From the NCBI RefSeq assembly GCF_052425735.1, contig NC_135760.1:9300001-9364000 (forward strand): a DNA stretch of 64,000 bases, read 5' to 3'. Positions within the stretch are counted from its first letter, which is position 1, and every line of letters begins with the position of its first letter. This DNA comes from Oculina patagonica. Lineage: Eukaryota. Under the pieces are notes generated by a model that was given only the letters and a program-made list of their open reading frames with translations, did not search any database and was not told the DNA's origin. This document shows, piece after piece, positions 34,732 through 59,600 of the stretch. The position numbers and the translations under genes are program-made.

Positions 34732-35041
34732 GTTTAACGTTTTTTAACCCCTACCCTCCCTTCCCGTCGGTGAATTAATTCACTCGTTCCAGGCCGTGAC
34801 CGTCTTGTTTTTGGCGCTTTGTTGTGACGCATCTTCCGGAATTAGCACAACCTTGAAAGACCTCTCGTAAATTTCACTTTCTATGATTTGTGGTCAGTTG
34901 TATAAACTGATCGAAAGTGAAAATTCACGTCACTTTACCATGTAAAGCTGCTTCTATGAAAGTGAAACAAACTTTGATTGATCATTGCTTACAACACTCC
35001 TCTAAAATTGTCCACGAAGGAAGAGAGAGTTCACAAAAATT

Positions 35042-38000
35042 ATGTCGAAGCCCTCATCGAAACTCGCAGGGACAGCTGTTTTGACGATCGCTCTTCTGTC
35101 CTTACAAGGGGCTTTATGGTATTTCCGACCACAACCTGCCGGGAAAGTGCCTTTATTGCATCGCTACAGTGCTGGGAACGACCATGGTGGTAATCGAAAG
35201 CTTTTGGCTGTGAACTTCAGCATGAATTCAGATCAAAAGTTGTCGTCTGGCAATATAAGGCATCTTGGAACAACAAATGATCAACAACATGTAAGTTATA
35301 CACTGCACATTTTCTGATCAAACGGAGAGGTTTTTGTAACTATACATATACTGTCATGGTGCAGTTATGATATTGCAAATTTTTATACCTATAGAACTTT
35401 ACAATAAGCAAAACCGAGATTCGAGACTCCAAAATCGCAGTGAATTGAACGATATGTTGAGCCGAGCAGAAAAGTCAATGAAAAACGTTCCATTTTAGAA
35501 TTTTCTGCACGAGCCACATATTAATTAAGGAGTGTAATTTTCCAATTTAGACATTACATACACTTGTATATAGAATTTTTGCATGACTAAGCAAAACTGT
35601 CGAAAGTGACAAACTACATGTATTATATTGAAGGTGACAGTAGGTCAACATGCTCTTTTGTGACTGGGTCAGAGTTCAGGTTTTCGATTGAGCAACATGA
35701 AATCGTAAAACAAACAGAACAACCAATGACAAAACGGATTTTCACCATTTGACCCTTGTCCCTTTTAACATTGGTACTTAGCAAGTAGATACACATTTCA
35801 GAGTGGCCTGAAGGGGAAAAATGGGAACTAGAATTTGGGCAAATTTTCACTGGGGAAAATAGGATTTGGGTCACTGGGACTGGGAATCAGAAAACAAATA
35901 AACAATACAACTGAACTGGGATTTGGAAAATCGGGAAAACAATAGACTGGAAAATGGGATTTATACCCCCTTCCTTCCTCCTTTAGGGCTCTCACTCAAG
36001 TGTAATTATTACCAGACTTAACATCATTGTAAACGTTGTCGGAGGTGGGTGGGGGCACCCTAGCTCCCTGAATTTTTATCCTTGTTCACTTAGCAAGAAA
36101 CTATGACATTTAGCAAAATAAATCTGGAAATGATACAAGAAATAATGCTACTTTGTTCTTTTCTGATTGCAGGAATGTTCTGCCTTGCGCCATTTAAACA
36201 GCTCAGGACAGCGATGTCATTTTGTCAAGTCAACTGAGAGTTGTCAGATGGATGAAGGATTTATTCAATATGTACAGTTTCCATACTGCTCATTTTCTAC
36301 AAAACTTGTTCCTCTTGCATTTTTCTTGCTGGTATGTAAGTAGGTTTTTTGGATTTGCAATCCTAAAAGACACCTTGACAACTAAAAATTCCCTAAGTGA
36401 GACCAAAAAATTATCTATGATTTACAGCCCTAAGTGAGACAACCTTGCCATTCCTATCCCTTTTCATAAGGGAGTTCCCATCCATGGTAAGAATCATTAG
36501 TTTCTAATTTTAAGATCTCCTGAAGTAATTTGAATGCCCGTCTTATTATATATGCTATAAGAAGTCAGGTAAAATAAGTCTGCATTTAGCCTAGAGGTAG
36601 AGGCCAGGGTGCATTCTGTCTACACACCACGCCAAAGATACGCCAAGTTTTATTACAGGTCTAAGGTCCAGCATTATTCATACCTAAAATAAGTCATCTG
36701 TAAGGGGTATCGAATGGTTTTTGAATTTTGAATTATCCATGCCAAAGATCTTCGGCATAACCTAAGTAGAATGCAGCCTGGCCTAGAGGCCCATCTGTCA
36801 TCAGGTCAGAGCTTATTCAGGTTTCCCTAGCTTTAAGTGCTGGGTGAACTACTTCCCCTAGCATTAGATTCACGGGTAACTGTTTATACACCTGGGTGGA
36901 CAGAGGCACAGTGAAAGTAAAGTGTCTTGCTCAAGCTCAAAATGTTGTGTGACCCATTAAGCCACCATGCCTCCCATACTAAAATTCAGGAATAGCAATA
37001 TTTTTAGCAAATAATTTGTTTTATCTAGATTGTATAATACACTGTAGTAGTCAGGTGCCGCGGCAATCATATTTCTAAACATTTTTTTTAGTTTTTATGG
37101 TTGGCATTCCTCTTTATAACTCTTGGATTGACAGCGGATGATTAGTAAGTTGCAAAAATTAATTATGGTTCCTTTTAATTACTTGATTTATTAAACACTG
37201 TTAGTATTTATTCAATTTCAGCATTTCTGATGCGGCATTTATTCGAGGGTGGTGTTTATTTTAAAATAATATTCAAGTACTAAATTTTCAGTTGCAGATT
37301 TAAGTAAAATACAGACCAGCATTGACATTATTACAAATTACATTTTAGCTAGTTTGTGACAAGATTCTAGCCTGTGTGAAAATCTGTATTTATTTAGAAA
37401 CCCTTTTGTTTGAATTGAAGTTGCAAACACAAGGGTCTTTATCAGAAGAAAATTAGTTCTTTAAAGTCATAACACACTTCAGGACAAACAGTAATCCTTA
37501 ATGACATAATAATTTTGTTATTAGATTATTTAAACATGAACATTATTGTTTTGTTTATTTTTATATTTGTATTTCATGTTTAGCTTCTGCCCTTCTTTGC
37601 ACGTGATCTCAAAGACATTACGAATCAGTCAGAATATTGCTGTATCCTTTTACTTTAGTGAGAAATTCTCTGCTGGATGCAAACAACACAATACAATCAC
37701 TGTGGCAGATGTAGGCAAGGAGCATAGGGAACATGATCCCACCACCCCTTACCTGGTTGCGAAATGGCCACTTAATTTTTTTTTAATTTCGAGCCCTATC
37801 TTCAGTTCCCCCTCCTCTTATTACAGTAGATCATCTATCACATATTTAGCACACTTCAGGCAGCTGTAATCTCCTATCAAATTTGGGCCAACAGGCTTTA
37901 AGGGAGGTCACCCTGTAGTAAATTTGTTTTAACCACTATTGAGTTTGAATATCAATATATAATTATTTCAATTTTGTTTAATATTTTACATTCTGTGAAA

Positions 38001-41000
38001 TTTGATTTCCTTGACTTTATTGTAAATAAAAGGGTGTTACATTTCTAGCCTTTGGCAATGGTGCGCCTGATATTTTCAGTGCCCTAGCAGCTTTCTCTCA
38101 CAGCAGAAATCAAAATGGAGTACAGCTCGGGATACAGGCCCTTTTTGGTAAGACAATAATATTACCTGTAAGTAGTACATATTCAAATCAGGGGAGTTTT
38201 TTCGGTGATCTCCAGAATAATCAAGGTTGAGGCATGCGCAAGTGCCAGAGAGTGAGGTCTGATGACACTTTTGGTTAATATTGTAGGCATGCAATGCATG
38301 CAGAGAGCTATGAAACTGATGCTCTTTGTCTCCAAGCCATGAGACCCATACAGCCGGAGCTTATCCCGGTTTCAGTAGCATTAAGCGACTAGGAGTATTG
38401 CTACTCCCCCCTGGATGGGATGCTAGTCCATCGCAGGGTTACCCCCAGCAGTAAATTCGCCGGTACCCATTTGTACACCTGGGTGAAGAGAGGCACTGTG
38501 AGAGTAAAGTGTCTTGCCCAAGAACACAACGCAGCGCCCCGGCTAGGCCACGACCCGGGCCGTTCGACTCGGAGTCGAGCGCGCTAACCATTAGGCCACC
38601 GCGCCTCCCCTTTGCACACAGATCTATAATGCTAGCTTTCATAATTAAGCAGTTCAGAGTTTGTTAAAGAAAGCACAGTTTGTGCACTTCACCTTTTACT
38701 TGAAAACGCCTCTCTGTTTCTTTGCAAACGCTTTCTCCTTTAAATATATATAACCTGCAATCAGGCATTCTTCGGGAGCGGGAATGGTGCAGTAGTGAGA
38801 GCACTCGCCTCCCACTAATGTGGCCGAGTTTGATTTCCAGACCGGCGTCTTACATGTATGTGGGTTGAGTTTGTTGTTGGTTCTCGTCATCGCTCTGAGG
38901 GTTTTTCTCTGGGTTCTCCAGTTTTCCTTCCTCCAGAAAAATCAACAGTTCTAAATTCCAATTCAATCGGAAACAGTGGACGAAGAGCCAGCCTGTGAAC
39001 TTGCCACTGCAAATTCCCATTTGTTTATTTATTTATTTATTTATTCTTTTTTTTTTCAAATTTTCTGCATCTTTATAATACACTTAATATATATCCATAT
39101 TTATGACTGTCTTGCAGAATGCGAAATAGGAGGTATCCTACCTTAAGCCAACAAATTCACCCACTCCATTGGTTGTTGGGTCATAGACTTTGTTTGTAAA
39201 TTTCACTGACCAGTGTTGCTCGTGCCTCAATTTTTCTGTAAATCATTTTATTCACCTGATGCGAAGCAGTTGTATTCTCATAGAGACCTTTGATTTTCTT
39301 TATATCCACTTTTGGCAAGTCTGTTCCTGAGTCTAGAAACTAAAAAGGCTGCCACTTTTCAATGACTTTTAAAACTCCAGTTTCTATAGGCAAATGTTTT
39401 GCAGGTTGGCCCCAATCATTTTCCAATCTTCATCAGTTTGCTTTATAACTGTTGATGTGGTATACCTATATTCGTACAATTTGGTAGGTAACAATTTTTT
39501 TTATCAATTGATTTATTTGTTTTTTTGTTTTTGTTTCCACGTTTCAGGTGCTGGTATGTTTGTGACAACAGTTGTTGTTGGTGCTATATCCTTTGTCTCA
39601 ACTATCACGTTGACAACTCGTCCATTTACCAGGGATGTCTTATTCTACCTGGGAGCTGTTTCATGGACGTTCATCACATTATATAAAGAAAACATAACAT
39701 TAGGAGAGTCAATAGGTAATTAACTCTCAGCTTGTTCCCTGATCATTATGGCTATTTATGTCTGCACAATTTATAGGCCTTCACTGCTAGCTGTATCAGA
39801 ACTCTCATTTCAGGAGTGTAGCACAAATTACATGTATCCATCATAAAGGAGATGGCATGTAAAGAAATCTGTGAGAGATCCATTCAGTTTCTCTGGTTGA
39901 TTGTTGCTTGGTTTTGAATTTTTTGCACAACCAACCAGATACAATACACAGATCTGGACCAGGTTGTTCAAAGCATGATTATGATAATTCAGGACTAGCG
40001 TGAATTTTGATTTCATTCTTTTAACTTTTCTGGTTTTCTGTTTATATTTTCTCTCCTCCAGTTAAGGACTGATGTCAAACTCCAAAGAATATGAGCACTA
40101 AAAACACCTTTAACTTTTATTCCTGGGTTGGTGTTAATCAGCTTTCGAACAACCAGCCCTGTACAGGGCGCGACAAAAGTGCTGTCCGATAGCCCGGGGC
40201 TAGTGGAATTATCCGTCGGGCTAGCGTATTCTGATCACGGGTTGCCCGACGGGCAAGCAACACACGGGCAATAAACATTGTTTTTTTTATGACAACCTTC
40301 AGAAATAAATGTGCATCAGACAAATTAGACTAAAGGGAAAAATTTGGGGCTCAAAAATGTGACTCACTGCATCCTTGGAGACAAAAACCGTACTGGTTTT
40401 ATAGTCGCCAACTTGAACGTGGCGACTATATTTCTCTCTGTTAAGATGAGTAACGGCCATTTTCTGAGGAATTTTGTCTTTCCAGAAAATTATATTGGAA
40501 GATCTTTGCTTTTAAAGCATTCACAATAAGAAAAGAAGTCATAGTTCTCCAATCCATGGTATTGCTTTGCCGTAAAGTACTCCATCACCTCGTAAAACTT
40601 GCAAATGGCTGACCGTTTTTGAAAACGCCCCAAAATGCATTGCAGGCATTGGGTACGTCATGTATGCCTATGAATTATGTCTCTTCAAATGTATCCTTCA
40701 GGATCCTTCATATTTGCAATCTTCTACATTAAGCTACAAAGTTAGTTGCCACAAAATCGTTATGTGTTTTTTTTTTTAATTCTTGTGGTAAGATTATTTT
40801 CTTTTCTTTTTGAATATTTATGTATTTATTGTCTCCAAAGGAAGAAATTATGCAAATTACCTTTGGGCTAGCTTCTCAGAGCTCTGGGCTAGTATGAAAA
40901 AATAACAGCTGCCCGAAGGGCAAGCTGCCTTTTTTATTTTTGTCTCACCCTGCCTGTAGATCAAGCTTTGTCTTGAATCAGTTTGGAATCTCAGACGTCT

Positions 41001-44000
41001 GAGGACTTATCAGAGCTGAAAATCACTTTCTATAAATTCTTAAGTCAGTTCCTAGGGAAATAGTTGGGTCAGAAACACAATTATTTCCGACTTTTGGTGT
41101 TCTAGTGCGGGTACCTATCCCCCACCTGGGGGCTGCAAGGCTGATTCAGTAAGAAAAAGTTTTGAGAGCTTCCAGCATTAAAATCCATATAACATGACCA
41201 TTGATGAGCCTTTTAAAACATATGTCACATTTATAAGAAAAGGGTAATTGATTACTTTTTTTCTTATTTTGTCAATAGGTTTCATAGTATTTTATGTAGC
41301 GTACATTCTTGTTGTCATTTTTGGCCACTATATCTACCAAAGATGGAAAAGAAATTCAGGGCGTGTTGAAATTAAAGCTGAATCCCCAGAATCAGGTACG
41401 TCCATAATGTAATTGGAGTAACTGCAGAGTACCCTGCCACACAAGCCCATTACTAAATTGAGATGTCTACATGGTACACAGTCGGTATTAAAGCATTCTT
41501 GTTTATGATGCTTCTGAGATGTTCGCTTTTAAACCATTGGAGTCTTTTGAGTCCCAATGACTGAATTGGCAGTGGACTTACTAAATGTTGAACACTGGCA
41601 ATCACAAAGATCTTTACAGTTACCAAGCGCTATGGTTAAAAACAGGAAGAATATTAAGGTAATCACCCCCCCCCCCCCCTTCCCAGAAAAAGAAATAACA
41701 CAAAGGGCCTCCTTAGTCATTTCTAACTACCGGTACATTGTATTGCTCCAGAAAATATCCATATCCCTCCCACAGAAGGTTTTAGGTTTGAATCCCCCTC
41801 ACCCCTCTGGAAATGTCAGTTAAACCCCATACTTGTGAGATCCCAACTCGTTTGGAATGTGTCCAATGACCTTCCGTGGGGTGGGTATGGATAAGTTTTC
41901 TAGAACTGCACATTCGCCATCCATTTCTTTTAGTATTTCTCTGTGTTCATCTTAAAGTGTCTTAAGTTTAATCCTTAACGTATTTATATCATTGTCAGGT
42001 CATTATGCAGTGTATACCTGGGCCGGGTTGTTCAAAGCACGATTAAGCTAATCCAGGATTAGTGTGAAGTTTGATTTCAGTTTTTTAACTTCTCATTGAG
42101 GTTTTCTGTTTATATTTTCTGTCCTCCATTTTTGACATCGACTAATCTCAAGCTCCACAAAACATAAGCAATAAAAACACTTTTATCCACGAGAAATTGA
42201 ACCCTGGATAAACTTTTAATCCTGGGTTAGTGTTAAACAACTGGGTTAGTGTTAAACAGTGTGAACAACCCGGCCCTGATAAAAGTTATAACATATTTTA
42301 TTTTCATATCATAGACATATATGCCTTGTCTGAACCTTCACTCTTTTTATGTTTTAAAAAGAATCCAATGGCGACTTTCTGGAGTCAGGTGGCCGTGCTG
42401 GAACAAGAAAACTTATACATGCAGCAAGGGGGAGTAATGAATCAGTAAACGCTGTGACTGTTAACGCAGAAACAAATGACATCAATTGGGAAAACACAAT
42501 TGCACACCATTCTCACCACACACTTTCAGGTAGGGTGTGTAATTATCACAATAAGTAATATTTATTCACACTGTAATAAGGCAATATTTCTATTTCTTGT
42601 AGATGCTCTTATTGCAAGTGAAAATACCTTGCTTGGTCCAGCAATTCACAGTGCTCCAATTCCTGCAAGAAAGGAGTCCACAAGTTCAGGTATTTATAAT
42701 AAACCAGATTTTTAAAGTTAGTAAGTAATTAAGATTCTTCATCAGTTGAAGTCAATTATTTAGTCAATCAGTCAGCTAGCCAGTCGGTTGGTCAGTATGT
42801 CAGTCAGTCATTCAGTCAGTCAGTCAGACAGTCAAACATTTAGTGTAGCAGTCAGTCAATCGGTCAGTCAGTCAGTTAGTTAGTCAGTCAGTCAGTCAGT
42901 CAGACAGTCGGTCCGTCAGTCAGACAATCAGTCAATCAGTTGGCAGTCAGTCAGTCAGACAGAGAGACAGTCGGTCAGTTGGTCAGTCAGTCAGTCAGTC
43001 AGTCAGTAGGTTAATCAGTCAGACAGTCAGTCGGTCAGACAGTCAGTCGGTCAGTTAGTCAGTCAGTTGGTTAATCAGTCAGTCAGACAGTCGGTTGGTC
43101 AGTCAGTCAGTCAATCAGTTAGTCAGTCAGTCAGTTAGTCAGTCAGACAGCTGGTCAGTCAGTCAGACAAATGCTCAGTCAGTCAGTAGTAGTAGTAGTA
43201 GAGTAGGTCAGTCAGTCAGTCAGTTAGTCACACAATCGGGTGGCAACTTCATAATCTGTGTCAAAATTAATTTAATGTACGGTTTATCAGTAGCATTGAA
43301 AAAGTATGATTCATGCCTCTTTGTTTTGCATTTTTTTTTTTAAATTTAGAACTACAGTATTTAATTACTATATGGAACGACAGTGACTATTTACTCATAG
43401 AAAGCTCAAGCTTTTAGTTTTTATTATTATTAGGCACTGTTAGAAACGTTGTAATAATAATGAACTTTATTAGTTAATGTGATACTCTTGTAATAAAGTT
43501 AATGTTAATCATGTCTATTTTGTTTCTGTTTGTTTCTTTTTCCCAGATGAAGACTTGCCTCTTCTGGGTGGAAAACGTAAAGTTAGTGCATGGAGAAAAT
43601 TTTTGCAGGGCCTGGAACCCATCGATCGAGAAGACTGGTGTAATAGCAACTTTTTCTGGAAATTCTTTATGATTGTAAAGGTACGAACTTCCTTATTTGT
43701 CCGGCGAAGAGACTCCCATATAAATAGGGCGGGGATGTTCATCCAAAATTGTGAAAAGAACCCCTAAAAGAGACCAAACTGGGCGTAGCTGAAGCTCTCT
43801 TCAACCCCTAAAAGATACCAAAGTATAACGAGCGGTCCGTACGAACAGTGTAGTGTTTGAGAGAGTTGTCACGTGACTCGTCACCAGTCGAGCATGTATG
43901 TCTGGCAATTGTCAGACGAGACACGTCTGTCATGTTATTTGAGAACATGATCTGTCTAAAGAAGAATTTCACCCAACACGTTCACAGCGGTTTTTTGATA

Positions 44001-47000
44001 TCTTGCAGTAAATAAGGGAGGTAGTTAATGGCATCACTTAGCAAACTATTGATTCTGTTAAAAAAAACATAAGCACATCACCTCAGTGACTAAAGAAGGT
44101 AGCTTACTTACTGAAAATAATTCGAGTTATCCTGCCACGTTCTTTTATAACGTGATCTGTCTAAAGAAGAATTTTCCCCAACACATTGAAAACGGTTTAT
44201 CAGATCTTGCAGTGACTAAGGGAGGTAGCTAGTTAAATGGCATCACTTAGCAAACTATAAATTTTGTTGAAACAAACTTAAGAAAATCACCTCAGTGACT
44301 AAAGAAGGTAGCTTTTGTACAGAAAATAATTTGAGTCAGCCTTGTGACATTCTTCAATAATGATGTCCGTATGAACTTGCTACCTGGCTGACGTCTCAGC
44401 AAGCTCTCATTTTAATTACTTACTGCTAGCTAGCGTGACGTTTATCCTTTATAAGTTTTAAATGTCCTCTCATTTTACTTCCGGTATCTCCGGAATCCAT
44501 TCTGCTTGCGCGATTACTCCCGTGAATCTGTTGCCATCTCACAGAGTTGGGCACTGGCTATAAGTTTTTTATCAGTTTATTTTGGCGCAGCACATTTATC
44601 TTATGTTGCGATGACATTTTTCCCTATAAACTGCCCAGAGCTCAAATATTAATCTCTTACTGCTAGCTTGCGTGACGTGTATCCTTTATAAGTTTTAAAT
44701 GTCCTCTCATTTAACTGCCGGTATCTTCCACTTAGAAGTCTTACATCAAGTATTTTGTTTGCGTTATTACTCGCGCGAATCTGTTAATATCTCACGGAGT
44801 TGTACACTGGCTGTAAGTTTTTTTATCAGTTTATTTTGGTGAAGTACATTTATCTCATGTTGCAAGTACCTTCTTTCCCTCAATTAATTGCCCGGAGCGC
44901 GTTCGAGCCTTGTCGCGAATTTTTTAATCCATTGCTTTAATTAGAACATTCGTGGACAATAACAAGCCAGTTCCAGTCTAATTTGCATATGTATGTCTAC
45001 GTGCTTGTTCCACTTAGCCTGTGTACAGCCGTCCCGCTCCGCTCAAAAAAATCGCGGAGGGACGTCCCCTCTGCGATTTTTTTGAGCGGAGCGGGACGGC
45101 TGTACACAGGCTAGTTCCACTTGACCGCGCAATTTGTTTACATCTGGCGTAGCGTTCGCTTCCCCACTAAACTAACTCCATTAGTGTAGTGTACAAACAC
45201 TACACTAAAAAATGGAATTTATTTTTATACAGTTTTTATGGTGCAACCCTAAACGAGATCTTGACAGCTAAAAATATTGGAATTTTTCGCAGAACACCCT
45301 ATAAAGTGAGACCAAAAATTATACCCTGGGGGCCCCGACGATTCAACGAGGAGCATGGTAATAAAAAAGGTAGAGTGATGTTCCGAGAATTCCAGTAAAA
45401 ACAAGAAAAGAGGAATACCTCTGAAGGTATTCCATTTTCCCAAAATCTTTTAGTGAAGTGGACCGTTCCATTTAAGAGCAAATTTAATTTTGCACAGGAA
45501 CTACTGGTTTCTCCAAACAAATGGAAAGCACCCTTTATCTCATACCCCTACCCCCACTACCAGATACAGAGTGGGATCAAGTTACAAATTCATCCTTTGT
45601 GATGGGGGGGGGGGGGGATGTGGAAAGAAACTGAAAATCTGTTCACTGAGGCTCATGTTTTGTTTGCAGGCTCCTGCAGTATTTTGTCTTAATCTCACTG
45701 TACCAGTTGTGGATTACGACAAAGAGAATCATAACTGGAACAAGTGGCTAAACGTCTTACACTGCATAACAATGCCGGTCTTTGGTGTCATGGCAACACA
45801 AGGTAAGTACCTTGTGTAAATATTTAATAACATGCTCGTAAAACACTATCATACACTGCTGTTCTGCCGAGAGACTCGACGTTCTAGATGAGTAAAGGTG
45901 AGTGTTGGTAGTAAAGTAAAAAAAATCCAACACTAGCTGCAGACAAGGAAAATCTTAACCCTGTTGCAATGTTTGTGTAATCGTTGTGTAATACTGCTAT
46001 TTTAGAGCGGTTTTCACTTGAGTGTCGAAAGTAAATTGCGTTTGCTTTGGTTTTGCATTACTACGCTTACTGATTGGATTAAAAATCTCGCGCCACTTTC
46101 TCAGCCAATCAGAACTAAAACCAAAACCAATTGTGACTCGCTCACGCACGTTTTCTGGCGCTTCAAGTTTTGATTGGTTCACTGGATTGTCTGTGTCCTT
46201 TGTGATTGGCCAGAGTAATTACTTTGGTTTTGGTTTTACGACACTCAATTGAAAGCTGCTCTATCTCACGAATCGATTTACAACATGGGCTCATAGCTGT
46301 TTGATATAACTGGAATTAATTCCTTTTTTTCTTTGGCAACGGGAACAATTTTTTATTGTATTTGTCGATATAGCCTATTCGTAGTTACGATAATCAGAAT
46401 AAAAAGAATTTATGAAAGCCTTATCAAACCCACTGTTTCAAAAGTACTTTTTCACATTTATTGCAAACATCAAATGCAATTCGTCATTCTTTTTTCCCCC
46501 ACTATGTTCATTATTTTGATTTTAGTTTAGTTCAATGAACTGTGTATGGAAACATTCTGATGATATTGTCTTAACCAAAAATCGACTTTCACAGCCTTTC
46601 AATTTTTTAACGCAAAAGAACGCGAAAGAAACAGCGAGTTTGAAGTAGAGGGGGTGGGAGGGTGGGGGCTAGCTCCCTCCACCCACTCCCTCGCGTTTCT
46701 CTACCATCAACGAACGAAGACGAGAAAAAAGAGGGCTGTCAACAGTCGGTACTCAAAAGTCCTCAAAAGTTTTATTCTCAGGTAACATCATAAATAAGTG
46801 ATGTATTCCGTTACTTCCAGTTCATGAGAAAGACAAACTGAATGGATGTTTTTAAGAAGAATAATAACCTTGGTTCGATGTTTTCTCGTAGCCGGCAATG
46901 TCATGATTGGTGAACGTTTTCCTGCCTGGGCGTTGGCGCTTTGTGGAGGAATAGCTCTAGCTGTGATTGTTGCCATGACAACTAGAAGTGACAAGCAGCC

Positions 47001-49569
47001 TTGTGGTCATTTTGTAAGTACTCCACAAGAATAACTTAAAGGGATCGAGGCAAAAACATTATTCAATAGAGGTTGTTGCGAGACGCACAAATTTTAGTGC
47101 GTCGGCCCAGACTGTAGATCAAGAGATCTGGGGTCGAACCTGGCATTGATCTTTTTTGTTTGTTCATCGCAAGGAATTTACTCTCGTAGAGCCATTGTTC
47201 AAATTAGTATCGGAAAATTGTTAGTTTGACCTGCAATGGACAAATTAGTATCGGAAAATTGTTAGTTTGACCTGCAATGGACAAGCATCCCATCCAGGAA
47301 GGAGTAGCAATACGATTGGTCATTGTTTTCCAAATGACGAATACCGCTAACCAAAAGATAAATCACTCAGTGAAAAACGTAAAGTTGGTTTTGCTTATGC
47401 TCATCCACTGATCAGCGATTTATCCAGTGGATAGTGTTATCTGCTTTTGAAGAACTGGGGAATGGCCATTTTATATTGCAGGCCACTGTACTTGTGATTT
47501 TTTTTTTCAGTTCCATAACTGCAAAAGTGTTTGACATCTTAGTGCCACTAATGTATTACTCATATTATCACGCTTCAATCTCTCTCTAGCTATTTGCGTA
47601 CGTGGCGTTCGTGGTATCAGTAATCTGGATCTACACGACGGCAAACGAGATTGTTAACCTGCTTCAGGTACAGTTGTTGGAGTGAAATAGCATATTTACC
47701 CTCTTGAATCAGTTGTTTACTGTAATTGTACATATCTTTATAATGTGAAGGGGTATCCATTATTTAAGTACATTACTTAAAAAAAAAAACTTCATTAAAG
47801 TTGTATCAATCATGTTATCTTGTAGACGTTTGGCATCGCGTTTGGTTTGAGCGACGCAATTCTTGGCCTCACTTTTCTTGCCTGGGGTAACAGTATTGGT
47901 GGTAAGTCTTGCATTTCTCTCAATCTTAGTAGGCGACTGGGGGGGGGGGGGGACAGTCTGTCTTCACCCTTAGTTCGCCGAGGTAAAGGTAAAGTCTGCT
48001 TTCGAGCCAAATGGCCAATCAGGTCATAGCTTATCCCGGTTTCAATAGCATGAAGCGACTAGTAATATTTCTAATCCTCCCTAGATGGGATGCTAGTCCA
48101 TCGCAGGGTTAGCCCCAGCATTAAATTTGGCGGTACCCATTTATACACCTTGGTGGAGAGAGGCACTGTGAGAGTTAAGTGTCTTGCCCAAGAACACAAC
48201 AGTGGCCCCGGCCAGGGCTCGAACGCTGACCGCTCGATGTGGAGTCCAGCGCGCTTACCATTAGACCAACGTGCCCCCCTCCCCCTTAGTTCGCTGAGGA
48301 AGAAACTAAATACGCGAAAGGAAAAAATTGCACTCCAAAGTTCCTCTTTTCCCGAGCCTCTGCCCCAACCCTATGCTGCCAATTTTTTCTTTCGCTTATT
48401 CCTTTTTGCTTCTGGCTCACACAACTGAGGTAAAAGATGAACTGCTCGTTGATCTACCGACAATGTACCAAAGATAACAAGACAAAACTTACTCTTGTTT
48501 TATTTTTCAGATTTTGTGTCAAACACAGCTATGGCAAGACAAGGATTTTCTCGCATGGCCGTGTCAGCTTGCTTTGGAGGCCCTTTGCTAAGTATCCTGT
48601 GATATTCAGCAGTGATACACTGATTCACTGCTAATTTCTTGTCACCGTTTTGTAAAATACAGCACAACTTGTAAAACTGACATCAGAACTACGCACCTTT
48701 CTTTTAAGGCTTATATTTGACCTTAGCTGAAATTAATCTGCCCATGGTATTATATTTAAAGTCAAAGCAAAATCGTTCTCGTTCACGCGAGAAAGGAACG
48801 GTGTAAATGGGGCTTTTGCCATGTTTGCAGAAAACGCGGTTACATGCTAGGGGCATAAGAAAGCCTCCAAAACAAAGTGACTTCAACCAGTCAAGCTCAA
48901 AACCGTCTTTATTTTGGATGTTCCGTATGCTTATAGCTTGCCATTAGGCGATGTAAACCATATGTAAATTGTCAAAATGAACTGTCGGAGAATTTGTGTG
49001 AGGTTTCTTTGTGGTACGTTTAAGATTGAAAGAGCTTCCTTAACTTCTCTCCAGATATGTTGTTAGGTATCGGTATATCATGCACTGTTGTCACGGTGTC
49101 ACGTGGACATGCAATACCGGTAAGTATATCTGTGTCTGCTTTAGCCTTTTCACAGCCTTTTATTTTCTCGTATTTTTGTTCGACCTTTGAACGTGCGAAA
49201 AAAAATCGCAAGAGAACTGGGCACGAGCGCAAAAGAAGAAGCGCGAGGGGTAGGGATAGGGCACTAGACCCCACCCTTGCTTTCCGCGTTTGCTGCTTTC
49301 AGTAGACGTCTGCTTTAGAGAGGAGTTCCATAAGTAAGAGTTCAATACAACATGCTAACACCCTTTTTGTCATTATCTCTGTCCAGTTACGTCACAGATA
49401 TCACCAGTACCAGATCTCCGCGGGATTTCTCGCCGCTAGTCTCAGTTCGTCCGCCATCTTAATTCCTTTAATGGGATTCAAAGTACCCCGGATGTACGGC
49501 GTGTACCTTATAGTTTTGTACGTAGCTTACTTGACGGTGTCTATAGCATGCGAGTTTAAACATATTTAA
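35042..49569 (+). CDS. SLC8B1: NCLX-type Na+/Li+/Ca2+ exchanger (CCX/SLC8B1 family), tandem copy 2, 17 exons, ~681 aa
   Basis: Exons 35042-35290, 36173-36331, 37092-37144, 37584-37641, 38033-38147, 39548-39715, 41279-41395, 42362-42529, 42603-42689, 43547-43680, 45670-45802, 46892-47013, 47590-47667, 47826-47901, 48511-48591, 49055-49119, 49387-49569 (2046 nt). Keeps family-like FCP, LFY, GNSIGDFVSN and ACFGG motifs. Confidence 0.94.
37642..38032 (+). other. U12-type intron 4 of NCLX copy 2
   Basis: Donor GTATCCTTTT; branch TTCCTTGAC at ~38007-38015; AAG acceptor. Confidence 0.92.
38329..38609 (-). mobile_element. tRNA-derived SINE specific to copy 2
   Basis: Minus-strand head gggaggcgcggtggcctaatggttagcgcgc and conserved body ttcttgggcaagacac; CTTTG duplication. 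The same family occurs at ~30229-30478, ~47983-48280 and ~13595-13790. Confidence 0.87.
40164..40952. mobile_element. hAT-like non-autonomous element specific to copy 2
   Basis: CAGGG.G.GACAAAA / TTTTGTCTCACCCTG ends; CCTGTA duplication; empty site in copy 1 at ~19045. Confidence 0.8.
45015..45113. mobile_element. Near-perfect 99-bp hairpin MITE with 8-bp TSD
   Basis: TAGCCTGTGTACAGCCGTCCCGCTCCGCTC..GAGCGGAGCGGGACGGCTGTACACAGGCTA, flanked by GTTCCACT on both sides. Confidence 0.88.
46003..46263. mobile_element. MITE in intron 11 of copy 2
   Basis: TIR TAGAGCGGTTTTCACTTGAGTGTCG / CGACACTCAATTGAAAGCTGCTCTA; not seen in copy 1. Confidence 0.72.
48592..49054 (+). other. U12-type intron 15 of NCLX copy 2
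   Basis: Donor GTATCCTGTG; consensus branch TTCCTTAAC at 49036-49044. Confidence 0.88.
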
Positions 49570-50187
49570 TGGCTGTCAGACCGTGAAGAGTAGGGTAGGT
49601 AGTGTAACAGTTTCCTTCTTGGTGAAGCCGGTTCGGTTATAACTTCTAGGTTTTACAAACTATTTTTTAGTATTTTGCAAAGTAGCTAGGGTCGTTAAGT
49701 ATGCCCTTCTCTTGGACGCGACAAAGGCTCCAATGAGAGCCTTTGTGTTGATTCTTTTAGTAAACGACTTTTAACAAAATATTATTTTACAAAGTATCAC
49801 AGGGGTATTTCCCAACACAATCGTGAAAGTTGAATGTAATCGTCAACTTTAAAATAATGGCCGTGAGATGATTTTGTGTTTAGGTAAATTTCGTATACAA
49901 TTTATCCTAAAGTTTTTCAAACCATTTTTATTGTTTCCAAAATATGAATGACAAGTGTTTGCAAGCAATTGATGTAACTCGATCTTTGGGAGAAACTTGA
50001 AAGTTTATGGAGCCGAGGGCCTGTTTTTATGAAGAAAAGATGTCCCTGGTAGAATGGTTACCCTCTCCCCCAAGCCATCTTTTATCGAGCGTTTATATGA
50101 CAAAAGTTGTCCCTGCTGTCCGAGCCGAAATTTTGGCCATCTTGGTTTCACGCATGCTCAATATGTCCTGACGTGTCCCTAGCAGGT

Positions 50188-51105
50188 GAGTTATTAAAGC
50201 CAGAGTGTTTACATGGAAGAAAGTTGGCTTGCTCCCCAAGGTCACCCTGCCTTTAAAGCGAGTGACCCTGTACCCAGAGTCACCCTGCCCCCCCCCCTTT
50301 ACCGGTATTGCATGTCCACGTGACCCCCCGAGTTATTAAAGCCAGAGTGTTTACATGAAAGAAAGTTGGCTTGCTCCCCAAGGTCACCCTGCCTTTAAAG
50401 CGAGTGACCCTGTACCCAGAGTCACCCTGCCCCCCCCCCCTTTACCGGTATTGCATGTCCACGTGACCCCCCGAGTTATTAAAGCCAGTGTGTTTACATG
50501 AAAGAAAGTTGGCTTGCTCCCCAAGGTCACCCTGCCTTTAAAGCGAGTGACCCTGTACCCAGGGTCATCCTGCCCCCCCCCCTTTACCGGTATTGCATGT
50601 CCACGTGACCCCCCGAGTTATTAAAGCCAGAGTGTTTACATGAAAGAAAGTTGGCTTGCTCCCCAAGGTCACCCTGCCTAAAGCGAGTGACCCTGTACCC
50701 AGGGTCACCCTGCCCCCCCCCTTACCGGTAGCATGTCCACGTGACCCCCCGAGTTATTAAAGCCAGAGTGTTTACATGAAAGAAAGTTGGCTTGCTCCCC
50801 AAGGTCACCCTGCCTTAAAGCGAGTGACCCTGTACCCAGGGTCATCCTGCCCCCCCCTTTTACCGGTATTGCATGTCCACGTGACCCCCCGAGTTATTAA
50901 AGCCAGAGTGTTTACATGAAAGAAAGTTGGCTTGCTCCCCAAGGTCACCCTGCCTTTAAAGCGAGTGACCCTGTACCCAGGGTCATCCTGCCCCCCCCCC
51001 CCCTTTTACCGGTATTGCATGTCCACGTGACCCCCCGAGTTATTAAAGCCAGAGTGTTTACATGAAAGAAAGTTGGCTTGCTCCCCAAGGTCACCCTGCC
51101 CCCCC
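50188..51105 (+). repeat. ~142-bp tandem array (~6.5 units) downstream of the copy 2 stop codon
   Basis: gagttattaaagccag starts at 50188, 50330, 50473, 50615, 50751, 50891 and 51037. Copy 1 has a single unit at ~33186-33300. Confidence 0.95.
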
Positions 51106-52487
51106 TTCCCCCCCCCCGAAACAACTTTGCGATTTTCTCATGTAAACATTTAACTGCTTTTTATAACGAAGTGTATGACAAACTCTCTCGCCCGGAATAG
51201 CTCAGTATGGAGGAATGACACTTCCATCAGCGAACATTTTTACCTGTATTAACAGGCCCTAAATTGCAGGAGAGATTAGCACAAACAATTTTGAGTTATC
51301 TGGCCTAAAGTCACTCTAATTTTTGCATCAGTTTATGTTAACACAAAGCGGATGTTTTTTTACGAAATTAAGAAATGTTACATTTGAGAAACCTATCAGA
51401 ACTTTAGTGATAGGATCACAATTTTATAAATTGAAAAATTGTATTTAAGTTAACTTATTCATTCAATTGTTACATTCAAATTGTATCATAGTTTTAATTT
51501 AATTCAAATTTCTTACGTATAGTGAGAATAATTACATTGAATCAATCTTAAATTACTTAATAGAATTATTTAAATATAGAGTACCAAATATCTACAATTT
51601 TAGATCCACGATCGCCAAATTAAGTATTTTTACTCGATACAGTCATTTTAAGAAATTTTACTTGTCTTAACTTAACTTTTGTAGTTATTTTATAACCTTT
51701 TCGTCGTTATTAGATTTTTAGAAGAGTTTTTAACTTTTGAAAACAAAAAAACTAAGTTAACTTCTAGCCTCCAATGGCAAAAAAGATATTGTATGTTAAT
51801 GTAAGGTATTTTAAAATCATTAGAGAACTTGTAGTGTTGTAAATTAGTGTTAAACATTCGTTTAATCCAAATAAATATTATTAACTATGTCGAAGTTTCT
51901 CCAGAGTGTGTCAGCGTACATTATAATTACATATTACAGGCTTGATCTTTTTCTTGCATAAAAGCCGAAGAGAGTTAACCGGGTGAACGTTCTTCAAATC
52001 TCAGCGACTATCAAATCCGGCGCTCAATAAAAAAGCGAGAGGTTTTGGTCCATTCCCCGTTGAAAATTTGAACTTGCTGTTTCGATAAAACCAGAAAATT
52101 TGATTAGAGCTTTCTCCTCGTTTTTCGGCTTGTAAAACCGTAAGTTGGAAGACCGTTGAAGGCGTAACCCGTTAGCTTGTAGCAAACTTTAGCAAGTCAA
52201 TTCATAAACGGTCTAAAGTCAACTCCAGCGCCAAAAGTTGTACGACAAAAACGCTTGAAAGATTCCTTTTGAACAAGGCATCATTATCACATGTATTCAA
52301 ACTGCAGATAATTAAAGATGAGTTTTGTAAGGAATGGCTAAGGTGGCTTTTGTTGTTGAAATTAATATACTAAAATTTGTTCCCCCGGGATTTCTAACAA
52401 AGAGCACTACTCGCAAAACGACCAGCAAAACTTTGCTTCGTCCCTCATGAAACAACGGCGAGGTTGAGTTTAGTTCAAGGACATGTC

Positions 52488-55400
52488 ATGTCTTTTATAA
52501 CGGTCAAATTTGGAGGTAAGTTTGTAGTTTCGACAGGTGAATTTCTTGGTTTGATTTTTTCAAGTGGTCGAGCGTTTTCAGTGCGAATGAGTTTGTGGTT
52601 GATTCTCGTCGTAGACAACGAAGAAGAATTGTTTAATCCAAATTGTGTGACGGTCAATTTGCTGGACAACCTCAGAAGACGATGTGGGTGCCAGAAAGGA
52701 AGTAAGACAGTTTACTGTGTGTTTATTTAAGCCTATTTGCAGCAGTGCTCTACTGTCTGAAGAGGTGTAAATCGGCGGTTAACGAGCAATTAGCAATGGC
52801 ATCTTATTTACAGAAGTTCAGCTTTGATACGCAACGTAACTTAGCGAGGTGTCCAGAGGTGTACAATATTTCCCTTCGATTCATCCAGAGCTTTCGCGCT
52901 CAGGTTTGCGTCGACAAATCGACGATTGCAGCAACAGTACTGTGAGTAAGAAAAGACACACGACAACTTATAACAATTAGATCAATTTGGTGATAATGGC
53001 GAGAAGCATGTTTATAAAGTTACCCACTCTCGAATTGTTTGGATTTGGCCTCCGCTCTGCCCACTTTCTTTCTTAGCTGAAACAGTGTTAGAACGTAAAC
53101 GTTCATCCTGAAATTTTAAAGCCGTTGTTTTTACCCTAGTGTGGAAGGCGTTCTTGCTCACTCGAGTGATCTTGCTTCTAAACTTGGTGTACCAAACAGC
53201 TTATTTAACTAGTTGCTTAAGTTACTTTAGCCATGGGAAATTTTTATTATACCTGATAATCTATCAGTTAACAATTTTGGCCATTTAAGAATAAACGGTT
53301 TTCATCCAGTAAACTGAAAGTGAACCATTGCTCATAAAGATGCCACAGGGTCGAACTCTCGGTTTTTGCCTTCTCGGTTGCTAAGCAACAACGTCACGTG
53401 CATGCAGGTTCCATCGATTTACAAGGTACCTTATTGTTACTTATTTTCGCGGGACTTAAATTTCGCGATTTGGCCAAAAAAAATACGATTACAGGAAGTA
53501 AATTTCGCGAAAATTGTCAAAATACTGGTCTACATTAACAAACAGTAAGTCTCAAAATTGGTCCAACTGATTTTAATTTTCCACTGCAACAGTTTCCAAT
53601 GACACTGAACAAAACCATATAACAAAACAAAACTTTAAAAACAGTTTGACATGTTCCTTTGCAACAAAGTGGCGTTAATTTGACGACTGTACCAAGATAA
53701 TTAAGTAGTAAACTGACGGAAACGTTGAATATTCACAACGAACTATATAGAAGGGTATTAAATTTCGCGTCGTTATTTTTCGCGAGAACCTTTTTTCGCG
53801 GGTCTTAAATTTCGCGATTTTCTGAAAATCGCGAAAATTAAGTCCCGCGAAAATAAGTAGCAAAAAGGTTGTTAGCAAATCAGGTGGTGTTCAGGTTGGG
53901 GTAACCCGACACGCCACGAAAATCAAAGGTTCCTTTGTCATGAGTCAAAGTCACATTTCACGGTACCTTTGTCACACCTTCGATAAACGCCAAAGTAGAA
54001 GCGCACTATCTTTGATCAAAATCAAAGACAGCCTTTGCTGCAAAAAAAGGTAAGACAAAGGTTTGGCAAAGACGGCTTTTACCTCTTTTACCCCAAATCA
54101 AAGGTGCGTGTCAAAGATCAATTCAAACCAATCTCTGATTTACGTATTTCTACAGACTTTGTTGTCACTAAATCGGGAAACAGAGCCAATCTGACCAATC
54201 GGAAACACCACAAACTGTACAAAGATTTCCGTACTGCGCGTAGGTACTGATTCGTCACGAATGTGGGTTTTCAGAGCTCTGGCCTCAGATGTCTCTCTCG
54301 CGGCAACAGAATTGAGTATGCGACTGCGCGCACGACTAACGGACGTCTGCGGCGAAGTACGCTTTTGGTCCCCCCCCCCCCCCCATTACCCCCTTTTGTC
54401 TGTGATAGCTATGATGTTCAAATTTAAGCTTTTAAATCACCTGTACACTGAACACGTCTATCTAACACGTTTTCTCTTTTTCCTTAGTATTGTTGGACCT
54501 ATCAGATGAAGACGGTGACATTAAAAATTTGCACGAGTTTCCAACTCAGTACGCCCACAGATTTCTAAAAGGACGTGAAGTGTTTGTGCTTATAAAGGTC
54601 GAAAGTAAGTTTTACAACTACGACTTCAACTGAACTGAATGAATTTCGTGTCGTTTAAACAATCCTCCGCGTACAGTGGAATTCCGATTTCTTGCACCTC
54701 CAAGGGAAAGGAAAATGAATTGGGTGAGAAATCAGGGAGTTTAGACTACCTTATTCTTACTAATTCTTACTTAATTTCGCGAAAATTTGGGTGCCGAATT
54801 TCGCGAGTATTAATTTTCGCGATTACAAGAAAAATTAGAAAAAAAGTGTATTAAATTTCGCGATGCTGTCAGTGGTTTCTGGATCAGTCGTCAAAGACTA
54901 AGGGAACTACTGGAAATACACAAAGGTCTAACTCAATCTTACTACAAGAAGTCTGCAAACGGAACCTAGGTGACTGTGCTTTTAAGAGGTCTTGGCTGAT
55001 TAATAAGTTAAAGGAAAGAGTAATCAGAGGAAGGGTGGTAGTCGAAAACAAGACGAAACGATATTTTCAAGGATAGTTAGTTGCAGTTTCATAAAATTAT
55101 TGTTTTGATTAAAAATGGTATTAATTGTCGTGTTTAAATTTCGCGCAATGTTGTTTTCGTGCGTATTAAATTTCGCGATTTTTCGGAAGTTTCGAGAAAT
55201 TAAGGGTCGGAAAAATCGGGATTCCACTGTGTAACGAACCTATCCAATGAGTCCTCAAGTTTTCTTCATTTTATTTCATTTTTACACAGAAGGACAAGGA
55301 GATCAACCAACAACTTACACGGCGCTGTTAAACGACCTAGAGAGATCCAATCCCAAACTTCTAGGTGAGTAATTTCAAAAACAACTGAGCTTAAGAGTAT

Positions 55401-56698: not shown

Positions 56699-59600
56699 TC
56701 ATGTGCCTGAGTAACCGAGCCCAATTCCACTCTTGCCCCCAGCCCCCCTGGATAACTGGAATGCTCGTGATCGTTCAAACTCCTTCTCAAGATCATCCAT
56801 GAGTTGCTGGCTCTGGGGCTGCGAGCCGTCTTGTTCCGTGGGCGCGTTTCCTCCTCCGTCTTTGATGCCCATTAACCGCCTGAATTTCGCTTGCATCTCT
56901 CCTCCCTGATCATTACTGAACGTTGTACTGTTCCACAAGGTCGATTTTGCCGCATCACTGCTGCTACTTGTACTGCTCTGTTAAACAAAACATCCATTGA
57001 AAAAGTCAGCTATAATTATTTATCTGCTAAGCCGGTCTCCCTGCAAACACAGTGCTAGCAGAGGTAACATTTCAAAACGTTGATAATACCAAGAATTGTA
57101 CAGTTTAAAAGTAACTTTGCAGTGTGATGTACCTTATAATTGGTTAAAAAAGTCATGTAACATGCTTGCCACTAGTGACTCGTTTTCCTTTTATCTTCCA
57201 ATTCTGGCCAGTTGTGACTGTCTTAACATTCACCTGCGCTTTCCACAGGCTACACGATTTATTGAGTTCTCATAAGTTTATTACGGATTATTACTTTATT
57301 TGCGGGCATCGTGATTGGCTCTATCGATCTCTCTCGTGCTTGACACCAGTTAGACGATTGTTTGTCGACGTCTGAATTTTATTTGGTGGGGCATTGTGAT
57401 TGGCTGTAAAATTTGTCGGATTTTATTGCTTTCTGCGGCCTTTTTTCCGCGCTTTCGACAGGTAACACAAATAATAATAATAATAATTTTTGTTTTCGTT
57501 GAGTTCTCACTTCTGGTTGGTTTAAACGTGGGCACGTGACTACAATTTAAATTCTAACATACACTATTACAATTAATAATTTAAAGTTAAAATAAGTTAA
57601 AAAAGGTTTTTTTGACCTCAGCAGTTTTCTTGCCACTCCATAGTAGCTTTCTCTTCTGTGCCTGCACAGCGTATTGGTGAGGGTTAACAACTGACGGGTT
57701 TATGTAGCTGGGTAGGTTCAGCATGGACGCAGCATCTTGGGCTTGTTTCCTCAGTGACTCTGCATGAGCTGCAAGCTTGGCTTGCACTTCCTCTGACGTG
57801 GGAGGACGGGCGGGGCGTGGAAGCGTCTCTAGGCCAGTCGAGGATGCTGTGACGGTAGAGATGGTGGAAAATGAGTAGATTAAACATTTGGTTTTACGGG
57901 AAACTACTGCAGGGTATTGAAAAGAAAGGTTTAGGCAAAACAAACACCTTTGTTTAAATGTCCTGTCAAATTGTGAAAATGATGCTCTCATGCATTTGGT
58001 GCAGAGTTCAAAAGAATAAAGGAAAATGTGATAAAACCTGTCGTTCAGAAAATTTATTGTCACTGACAAAAAAACAGGTACACAATTCGTACATGTGCGT
58101 ACTTCGGATATGTCGGGTCTATAGCAGTGTTGTTGTTATTTTTTGGATCGATTAAAAGCATGTCTGATATAATTGATTTAATAGACCTTATTCTCTTCGC
58201 ATTTTGTTTCCCCAATTTAAACCATATAAAAATACTCTTGAGAATTCCTGCTCGGTATAACCATATTTTCAAATATTTGATCTATATCAATGAATAATTT
58301 ATAGATGGATTAAAAACAGTTCTCTAGAGAACAATATTATATGATGTGGTCAAAAATGGGAAAACAACCACGCGAATAAGGTCTATTGTATGATTCTGCC
58401 TTGGCAAAACATAAGTTTATTAACCATGCAGCAATGTTTCACACAATCAAAACACTAAAGAGTCAAGTTTTCTCTTTAATGATATCTGCCATGTGTGATT
58501 TACTTTCCCTTTCTTTTTCATCCACTGATCAACATTGTGAGCTTCTCACTAATGACAGGTGGTGATTCATAGAAAGGTTTCCAAATTCAGAAGCTTACTT
58601 CTCCTTTGAGAATACCAAGCATATTTCTGAAGTTAGTTTTGACAATTTAGTGGTATGTCAAGACAAATTCAATATCCTCTAGTTGAAATAAAAATTAGAT
58701 ACCGATCGTACTTGTATTTATTTTCTCACATAATTTTGCTAGCCATAAGTTCGGGATTCACGTTTCAATGACTTGGTAGTCAAAAATTTACCTCTCTCTT
58801 CCTACTTCATATATTTGTAACAACACTTAAGAGAATTAGCGCAATTTTCGATTAAATGCCCTAAAACTAAAACCAAAGAATTCACTCTGGCCATCACATG
58901 GGACACAGTGAAAACCGCTTTAATTTGTGTACACCACCGCAGACAGATTCCTACCTTTTACAAACATTTTCTTTTCATGACTTGGAGAAGTGGCTTTCTC
59001 CTCAGACCTGTCTCTGTCGCGGTCACGATCTCTGTTTCTGTCACGATCTCGATCTTGCCATCGATCTCTACCCCAGTCCCTGCCCCTATTATTCCTGCCC
59101 CTGTCCCTGCCTCTGTTTCTGTCTCGGTCCCTGTCTCTATCATGGCGTCGGCTGTAGTCACCACTGGCCCTTCGATCTAAAAAGAAATCAACAACTGAAT
59201 TAACACCCTTTTGCAATTATTATGATATTCAAGAGAAACAGGCTCTCCTAAAAGACTCTGAATTGTGTTGTTTAAAATAATGAAGGAGGGCATTTATTTA
59301 AAAAAAAAAACCTAGAAACTATTTAAAAAACCCTAGATTTTAGAAACATTGTTGATGCTAATCGAAAATTAGCATCAATTTCAAATTTATGACTTTGCAG
59401 TGGAGTTCTCTGTTTACAGTTTCTGCCCCCAGTTTTGACATTGATTGATCTTAAAGTAAACTATACAAAATATTAGCTGCAGTGAAAAACTTTATACAAG
59501 AGAAATTGAAACCTTCACTAACTTTTAATCCCAGATTAACTTTCCATAAAATTATCCATACCTCACCCATGGAAGAGATTTTTCCTAGGACCCCCCCCCC

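Follow-up and report, generated by a model that had tools for sequence, protein, structure and literature searches.

The window, by which we mean the whole stretch of DNA that was analysed, comprises 64,000 nucleotides of the coral Oculina patagonica (contig NC_135760.1, positions 9,300,001 to 9,364,000 of the forward strand). It contains a tandem segmental duplication, in which about 7580-34294 corresponds to 34970-52107, with an NCLX/SLC8B1-like gene in each half. Exon pieces of both gene copies matched the Pfam family Na_Ca_ex (PF01699), and a 671-aa hypothetical protein of O. patagonica (P0159) aligned by tblastn with approximately 95-100% identity to copy 1 and 80-95% identity to copy 2. 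Because 16 exons of this protein were hit in each copy and one further short exon was not, the genes consist of 17 exons, and the exon at the junction discussed below is number 16. The next protein relatives are only about 73% identical, too distant to share the transposon insertion described below, and the 3′ flanks of the two gene copies diverge by 9.1%. Exon 16 encodes part of the second Na_Ca_ex domain, and the adjacent exons match PF01699 as well. A 1209-nt contig of an RNA run (X4, from organism B) joins 49119 to 49387, with the end of exon 15 as its upstream loose end; since this contig is spliced and the intron is bounded by GT..AG, 49119/49120 is a used donor site. The relevant features of copy 2 are as follows:

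49056-49119, plus strand: exon 16, from the spliced X4 RNA contig and residues 590-612 of P0159 (tblastn)
49098-49123, plus strand: template of the inserts, made up of the last 22 nt of exon 16 and GTAA of the donor
49120-49386, plus strand: intron 16, 267 nt, GT..AG, from the joint in the X4 RNA contig
49387-49569, plus strand: coding part of exon 17, with the stop codon at 49567-49569 (Na_Ca_ex profile positions 91-150)
49570-50016, plus strand: proximal 3′ UTR, covered by X4 contig 13 over 49638-50016

Downstream of this calcium-exchanger gene copy, 913 bases on the plus strand (50188-51100) form a single tandem array, for which Tandem Repeats Finder gave a period of 142, 6.5 copies and 96% matches. 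The initial annotation had described six antisense copies of the exon 16/intron 16 junction within units of about 142 bp, and this was borne out, five copies being exact and one carrying a 2-nt deletion:

50188-51100, plus strand: tandem array of six full units (136-146 bp) and a 64-bp partial unit
50299-50324, 50442-50467 and 50584-50609, plus strand: inserts of units 1-3, exact reverse complement of 49098-49123
50722-50745, plus strand: insert of unit 4, 24 nt, with TT lost
50860-50885 and 51006-51031, plus strand: inserts of units 5-6, exact reverse complement of 49098-49123

The 26-mer TTACCGGTATTGCATGTCCACGTGAC occurs exactly on the plus strand at 50299, 50442, 50584, 50860 and 51006. On the minus strand it is exact at 49098-49123 in copy 2 and has one mismatch at 31698-31723 in copy 1, and none of 100 shuffles of the window gave a match to it. 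A genome-wide search of the 529-Mb assembly found it in seven places, namely the array, the copy-2 source and the one-mismatch copy-1 junction. The inverted match grows to 29 nt with one mismatch, and its arms lie 1175 nt apart. Within the 26-mer, copy 2 (GTAAG) and copy 1 (GTATG) are told apart by a single base, the A at 49123, and the inserts show the state of copy 2. This bears out the earlier claim that the inserts match the donor of copy 2 and not that of copy 1. The array units vary at only four substitution sites (mean pairwise 1.3%) and by several indels, in a nested pattern; unit 1 retains the copy-1 state GGAAG, and units 2-7 read GAAAG. A divergence of 1.3% between units, as against 9.1% between the 3′ flanks, indicates that the array is much younger than the gene duplication. 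No Rfam family was found within 48000-52500.

The last unit of the array lacks 38 bp between two GGTCACCCTGCC direct repeats. This 12-bp direct repeat is present twice per unit (window 50240-50289 and 51088-51100), and a contig of a coral metagenome (DNA run X1, see below) that covers 50059-50251 also lacks the 38 bp between the two repeats. The shared absence may reflect recurrent slippage or conversion between the paralogs.

The array unit proved to be the inner segment of a dispersed element, running from GAGTTATTAAAG to a C tract. Positions 11-112 of the 142-bp unit have at least 439 candidate places on all chromosomes, at about 87% identity. We defined the ends of the element by aligning 11 dispersed copies with both gene-linked copies. 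The dispersed copies (loci L008-L020) are 553-593 bp long (about 570 bp) and have the ends GGGCCTGTTTATAT...ATATAAACAGGCCC; their inverted termini are near-identical over about 50 nt (57 of 70 positions in L017), and the ends are present in both gene-linked copies. The flanking triplets were identical (TAA, TGA, TCA, TTA) in six of ten dispersed copies, which is a 3-bp TNA duplication, and paired TAA with TTA in three others of the ten; at the gene-linked copies the flanks are degraded. The element is short, non-coding (the largest ORF in gene-linked copy 2 is below 60 aa) and high in copy number. Judged by termini, TNA duplication, length and copy number alone, it would be a Tourist-like (PIF/Harbinger-type) MITE. 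Its two gene-linked copies are:

50017-51259, plus strand: MITE copy at gene copy 2, 1243 bp owing to the array, ends GGGCCTGTTT...AAACAGGCCC
33015-33448: MITE copy at gene copy 1, 434 bp

The insertion lies 448 bp 3′ of the stop codon and is present at both gene copies. In both gene-linked copies, about 165 bp from the middle of the family sequence are missing, and their identity to the other copies is about 80%; they are an older, shorter variant of the family. Because the missing 165 bp and private changes are common to both gene copies, a single MITE insertion must predate the gene duplication. Gene copy 1 holds one unamplified unit without an insert (33185-33301), in agreement with the initial annotation, which had overlooked that the unit is part of a MITE and that the insert sits in an expanded C tract.

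The C tract is about C6 in the 194 family members that have the exact flanking pattern. Six members carry a tract of C16-C29, in some cases interrupted by T or A, and none of the six has a foreign insert. These six loci (C9:21055981, C13:21908745, C3:3334259, C1:46698420, C9:15372851 and C1621:6569) suggest recurrent homopolymer expansion within the MITE. Gene copy 1 has an uninterrupted C16 at 33286-33301. The full units of copy 2 read C8-C13, 2-4 T, the rest of the insert and then C5, and the element ends its array in a further C tract:

51099-51117, plus strand: terminal C tract of the element, C7 TT C10

Since runs of C flank the insert on both sides, the insert split an expanded C tract. 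No similar insert was found in the other MITE copies genome-wide, that is, in copy 1 and more than 200 dispersed copies. The left junction consists of the C run, 2-4 T and ACCGG, and the right junction of GTGAC followed by C5. On the right side, the C tract and the template context have C or CC in common, and on the left side unit 4 shows a CTT overlap where the other units have 3-4 T. Both sides are compatible with priming homology, though weakly. The converse direction of transfer, in which the 26 nt passed from the MITE into the exon, was rejected, because the stretch is conserved Na_Ca_ex coding sequence in both paralogs and is absent from other MITE copies.

Taken together, the array is probably a private structural mutation of a transposon copy, that is, a templated repair scar that was subsequently amplified, rather than a built regulator. 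The initial annotation had put forward a local template switch followed by amplification, and this idea fits the shared insert junctions, the copy-2-specific base and a source lying 1.18 kb upstream in cis. In the proposed course of events, the two gene-linked copies and the family alignment document the opening steps: the putative Tourist-like MITE entered the 3′ flank before the tandem duplication of the NCLX-like gene, and its C tract, C6 in most family members, grew to about C16. The G/C homopolymer would then have stalled replication or broken, and the plus-strand 3′ end exposed by resection (...CTT) would have bent back to pair with the AAG of GTAAG, either in its own strand or in the nascent pre-mRNA, and served there as a primer. 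A polymerase could have read 24-26 nt across the boundary of exon 16 and intron 16, the extension yielding ACCGGTATTGCATGTCCACGTGAC. The next template bases are ACC, and a match of 1-2 C would have let the extended end join up with the C tract again. Such a pattern would be that of a polymerase-theta-type templated insertion or of template switching. Afterwards, a head-to-tail duplication using GA or CGA as microhomology may have doubled the stretch from GAGTTATT to the insert, slippage or unequal exchange may have produced 6.5 units with four substitutions and several homopolymer length changes, and the last unit would have lost its 38 bp between the GGTCACCCTGCC repeats.

Several observations bear on these later steps. 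The position of the insert in the expanded C tract of the MITE explains a break at that site, and the antisense orientation of the insert on the plus strand implies that a plus-strand 3′ end copied a sense-strand template (folded-back DNA or nascent RNA). The copy-1 donor GTATG offers no AAG for a ...CTT end, whereas the copy-2 donor GTAAG does. The unit boundary CCCCC-GA-GTTATT shares GA (CGA in the copy-1 state) with ...CCCGAA and ...GGCGAGTTATT of the element, and this suggests, as far as the letters can indicate, a head-to-tail duplication at 2-3 nt of homology. Because the insert and its junctions are common to all units, the capture came first or in the same event, and the amplification came after it. 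Microhomologies of 1-3 nt and a varying T count make the priming model one that a single locus cannot prove.

Runs of 16 or more G, as present here on the minus strand, belong to the sequences known to block replication and to be mended by polymerase-theta-mediated end joining. Comparable products are known from other systems. In C. elegans, short inserts are copied from nearby sequence with about 1 nt of priming homology, and they also occur in natural isolates (PMC4032859); tandem duplications with inserts depend on polymerase theta (PMC7368036); and a further report describes G-quadruplex DNA as a replication barrier that is handled by polymerase-theta-mediated end joining (PMC4654259). The array resembles polymerase-theta (and FoSTeS/MMBIR) templated insertions in its 26 nt taken from nearby sequence, its apparent 1-3 nt of junction homology and its replication-impeding G/C tract, as well as in its association with a tandem duplication (PMC4032859, PMC7368036, PMC4654259). 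In the published cases, however, the template lies in the immediate vicinity of the break (PMC4032859, PMC7368036). The template of the array is 1.18 kb off and inverted, and the product is amplified six-fold, unlike what has been reported; the distance is thus not an exact fit to classical short-range templated insertion.

The same scar could also have been copied from unspliced nascent pre-mRNA, as RNA-templated repair, instead of from a resected DNA strand. The insert spans an exon-intron boundary and is antisense, its polarity fits the copying of either plus-strand DNA or pre-mRNA, and the break site lies within the transcribed 3′ flank. DNA and RNA templates are, however, indistinguishable by sequence, and a DNA fold-back needs no extra assumption, whereas an RNA template requires that the unspliced intron start persist until polymerase II is 1.2 kb downstream. 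We consider the RNA template quite unlikely, and templated repair followed by amplification remains our preferred reading.

To see how general the array is, we compared contigs or reads of four runs over 48950-50400, where contigs can drop repeats and break at homopolymers. The RNA run X4 gave the spliced contig mentioned above, with zero depth in intron 16. Over 49638-50016, contig 13 of this run shows two differences to copy 2; as copy 1 differs at about 50 sites, this contig represents copy 2, the 3′ UTR of which is hence at least 447 nt long. Its contig 14 reads the copy-2 letters 50003-50140 and then continues with 28 letters that are unique genome-wide to 51177-51204, so that the following stretch is missing:

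50141-51176, plus strand: stretch absent from the copy-2 form of X4, comprising most of the MITE core and the entire array

The joint 50140/51177 has non-canonical ends on either strand and a 2-nt AT overlap. These non-canonical ends and the shared AT make a genomic deletion allele more likely than splicing, although a run of RNA only is not proof of it. We considered the joint as an intron and found this unlikely, since no GT-AG, GC-AG or AT-AC ends exist within the 2-nt ambiguity on either strand. An origin of contig 14 from another MITE copy was excluded, because its first 14 nt are unique flank, copy-2 letters follow, and its last 28 nt are unique. In addition, X4 contig 9 (49055-49506) carries the copy-2 base at 49091 and copy-1 bases at 49431 and 49446; paralog-diagnostic sites are thus mosaic in organism B, by gene conversion or a different paralog history.

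The DNA run X1 contains both paralogs, and its one contig across 50059-50251 goes on with C18, which is a form like the last unit of the array. Depth over 50273-50400 was zero in both X1 and X4, and no insert was seen in either. The absence of the array from these two runs points, weakly, to a feature that is not fixed, since contigs collapse repeats and the samples are possibly of different species. From the same absence, the array is most likely neutral or nearly so.

As the existence of the array rests on the assembly, we also considered that the array or its inserts were made by mis-assembly or by chimeric reads around the homopolymer. Neither X1 nor X4 has an insert-bearing contig, homopolymers are error-prone and X1 shows C18 after 50251; moreover, a scan of metagenome contigs with TTACCGGTATTGCATGTCCACGTGAC gave no match, and a protein search with an array ORF (window 50387-50530, minus strand) gave no candidate. 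On the other hand, the six units differ by four nested substitution sites and several indels, as real repeats do, the insert is identical to the copy-2 junction in cis, private base included, and the unit junctions are identical and orderly. X1 and X4 are other samples with short-read contigs that collapse repeats, so that the assembled individual is untouched by them. We accordingly regard an artefact as very improbable.

The initial annotation had noted an ATTAAA in each unit and a first AATAAA after the stop codon (49567-49569) at about 51870, and both statements were correct. The first of the ATTAAA hexamers is:

50193-50198, plus strand: ATTAAA nearest to the stop codon on its 3′ side, followed 12 nt later by GTGTTT and repeated in all seven units

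The dispersed MITE copies read GCAAAAATAAC at this place, so that only the two gene-linked copies have the ATTAAA. It is therefore possible that the MITE provides a poly(A) signal and that the mRNA would end ahead of the inserts. On another reading, the array acts as a poly(A) or termination module, with seven ATTAAA and GU-rich signals in copy 2 and with the antisense inserts as passengers. Between the stop codon and the ATTAAA at 50193, which is the earliest strong hexamer, there is only an AGTAAA at 49759; the ATTAAA is absent from dispersed MITE copies and kept by copy 1. However, runs of contigs cannot display 3′ ends, the X4 form without any ATTAAA is still expressed at a similar contig depth (16 versus 10-27), and one signal works without amplification. 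We hold this function to be unlikely.

The initial annotation had gone further and proposed that the pre-mRNA folds back onto its 5′ splice site, or forms dsRNA against the paralog, as a copy-number-tunable regulator. This proposal found no support, the pairing being only thermodynamically possible. In its full form, it states that the array is transcribed in the copy-2 3′ UTR or in nascent RNA downstream, and that the six antisense inserts, by pairing either with the donor of exon 16 or with the exon itself in one or the other paralog, tune splicing, editing or RNAi by copy number. For the 26-bp duplex, the predicted energy is -55.4 kcal/mol, compared with -53.9 when copy 1 is the partner and -47.8 when the spliced mRNA is, and all 26 pairs are present in the predicted minimum-energy fold of 49040-50330, with pair probabilities of 0.8-1.0; according to these predictions, pairing is possible if both arms lie in one RNA. 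No AATAAA occurs before 51870, and the copy-2 RNA of X4 reaches at least the equivalent of 51204, so that at least one allele shows read-through past this site. The masking of splice sites by long-range pairing is, furthermore, a recognised type of regulation (PMC8052449, PMC2724269).

Against these points, no X4 contig shows the array in RNA, none of them covering 50175-50400, and the first ATTAAA with its GU-rich stretch precedes the first insert by 106 nt, the signal occurring seven times in the array. The array is absent from two other samples, and in X4 copy 2 is expressed without it; likewise there is no conservation, the array arm being missing from X1, X4, copy 1 and all other MITE copies. 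The short intron 16 (267 nt), located 1.2 kb upstream, can be removed by co-transcriptional splicing before the array is transcribed, and a duplex of 26 bp is short for Dicer-type processing. Two small-RNA runs (X34 and X35; size-fractionated ncRNA, raw reads) gave no reads on 48950-50400, even in the MITE part, and are thus no test of the proposal. Regulation by the inserts is therefore highly improbable. A specific version, in which the six antisense copies of a read-through array in array-bearing colonies clamp the last copy-2 5′ splice site and also, acting in trans, the near-identical exon 16 of the other paralog, and thereby set the exchanger dose, has an even slimmer chance of being true. 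If it were true, the array would be a young, polymorphic, self-made antisense regulator born of a repair accident, with repeat number translated into the dose of a mitochondrial Na+/Ca2+ exchanger.

Like the long-range complementary regions that mask splice sites in human genes and the intronic pairings of Drosophila, the array has one arm at a 5′ splice site, the other arm more than 1 kb off and a predicted duplex of high stability. Unlike those regions, which are conserved and usually intronic, its position is 3′ of the stop codon and may even be 3′ of the poly(A) site, and it is not conserved. Pairs of inverted-repeat transposons in 3′ UTRs, for example inverted Alu elements, form edited or nuclear-retained dsRNA of hundreds of bp. 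The array is comparable to such pairs in that a transposon-borne sequence of the 3′ flank could pair within the transcript, but its pairing spans 26 bp and the partner is a coding exon, not a second transposon. The array is not evidence for a working regulator.

As to the element itself, its inverted termini of about 50 nt starting with GGGCC, the TNA duplication, the length of about 570 bp, the lack of coding capacity and the hundreds of copies are those of Tourist-like MITEs, and the tandem expansion of one inner segment is that of MITEs with an internal minisatellite. In contrast to other Tourist-like MITEs, the repeat unit here includes foreign host-gene sequence. On the repair-scar reading, the locus is a clean natural example of a fragile homopolymer in a transposon that captures a piece of a host gene by template switching and then amplifies it. 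The scar is unusually legible, since what was captured, and later amplified, is a splice junction of the very same gene. Repair scars of this kind can create long-range complementarity to a splice site in one step, which is raw material for regulation at the RNA level. The array is probably also a structural polymorphism, situated in the 3′ flank of only one member of a pair of coral NCLX-like paralogs; it could serve as a length marker, and array, single-unit and deletion alleles could serve as a natural experiment.

Some further observations concern the remainder of the window. Intron 16 of copy 1 contains about 390 bp (31851-32240) without a counterpart in copy 2, the alignment blocks stopping at 31850/49251 and restarting at 32241/49251. 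A dispersed short repeat (about 80-250 bp, 81-86% identity) is found in several introns of both gene copies, at 13670-13750, 30262-30478, 36855-36935, 38345-38609 and 48028-48279, and its open frame reads ...DGMLVHRRV.PS.KF.GTHLYT.V.RGTVRVKCLAQEHN.... In the homologous intron of both copies (23440-24365 and 42742-43240) there is also a degenerate tandem repeat of short period, one frame of which gives SVSQSVSQ.... A convergent gene may lie downstream, over 6 kb away from the array, since the minus strand at 57587-59216 has ORFs that combine an RD/RS-rich stretch with a C-terminal part that looks conserved.
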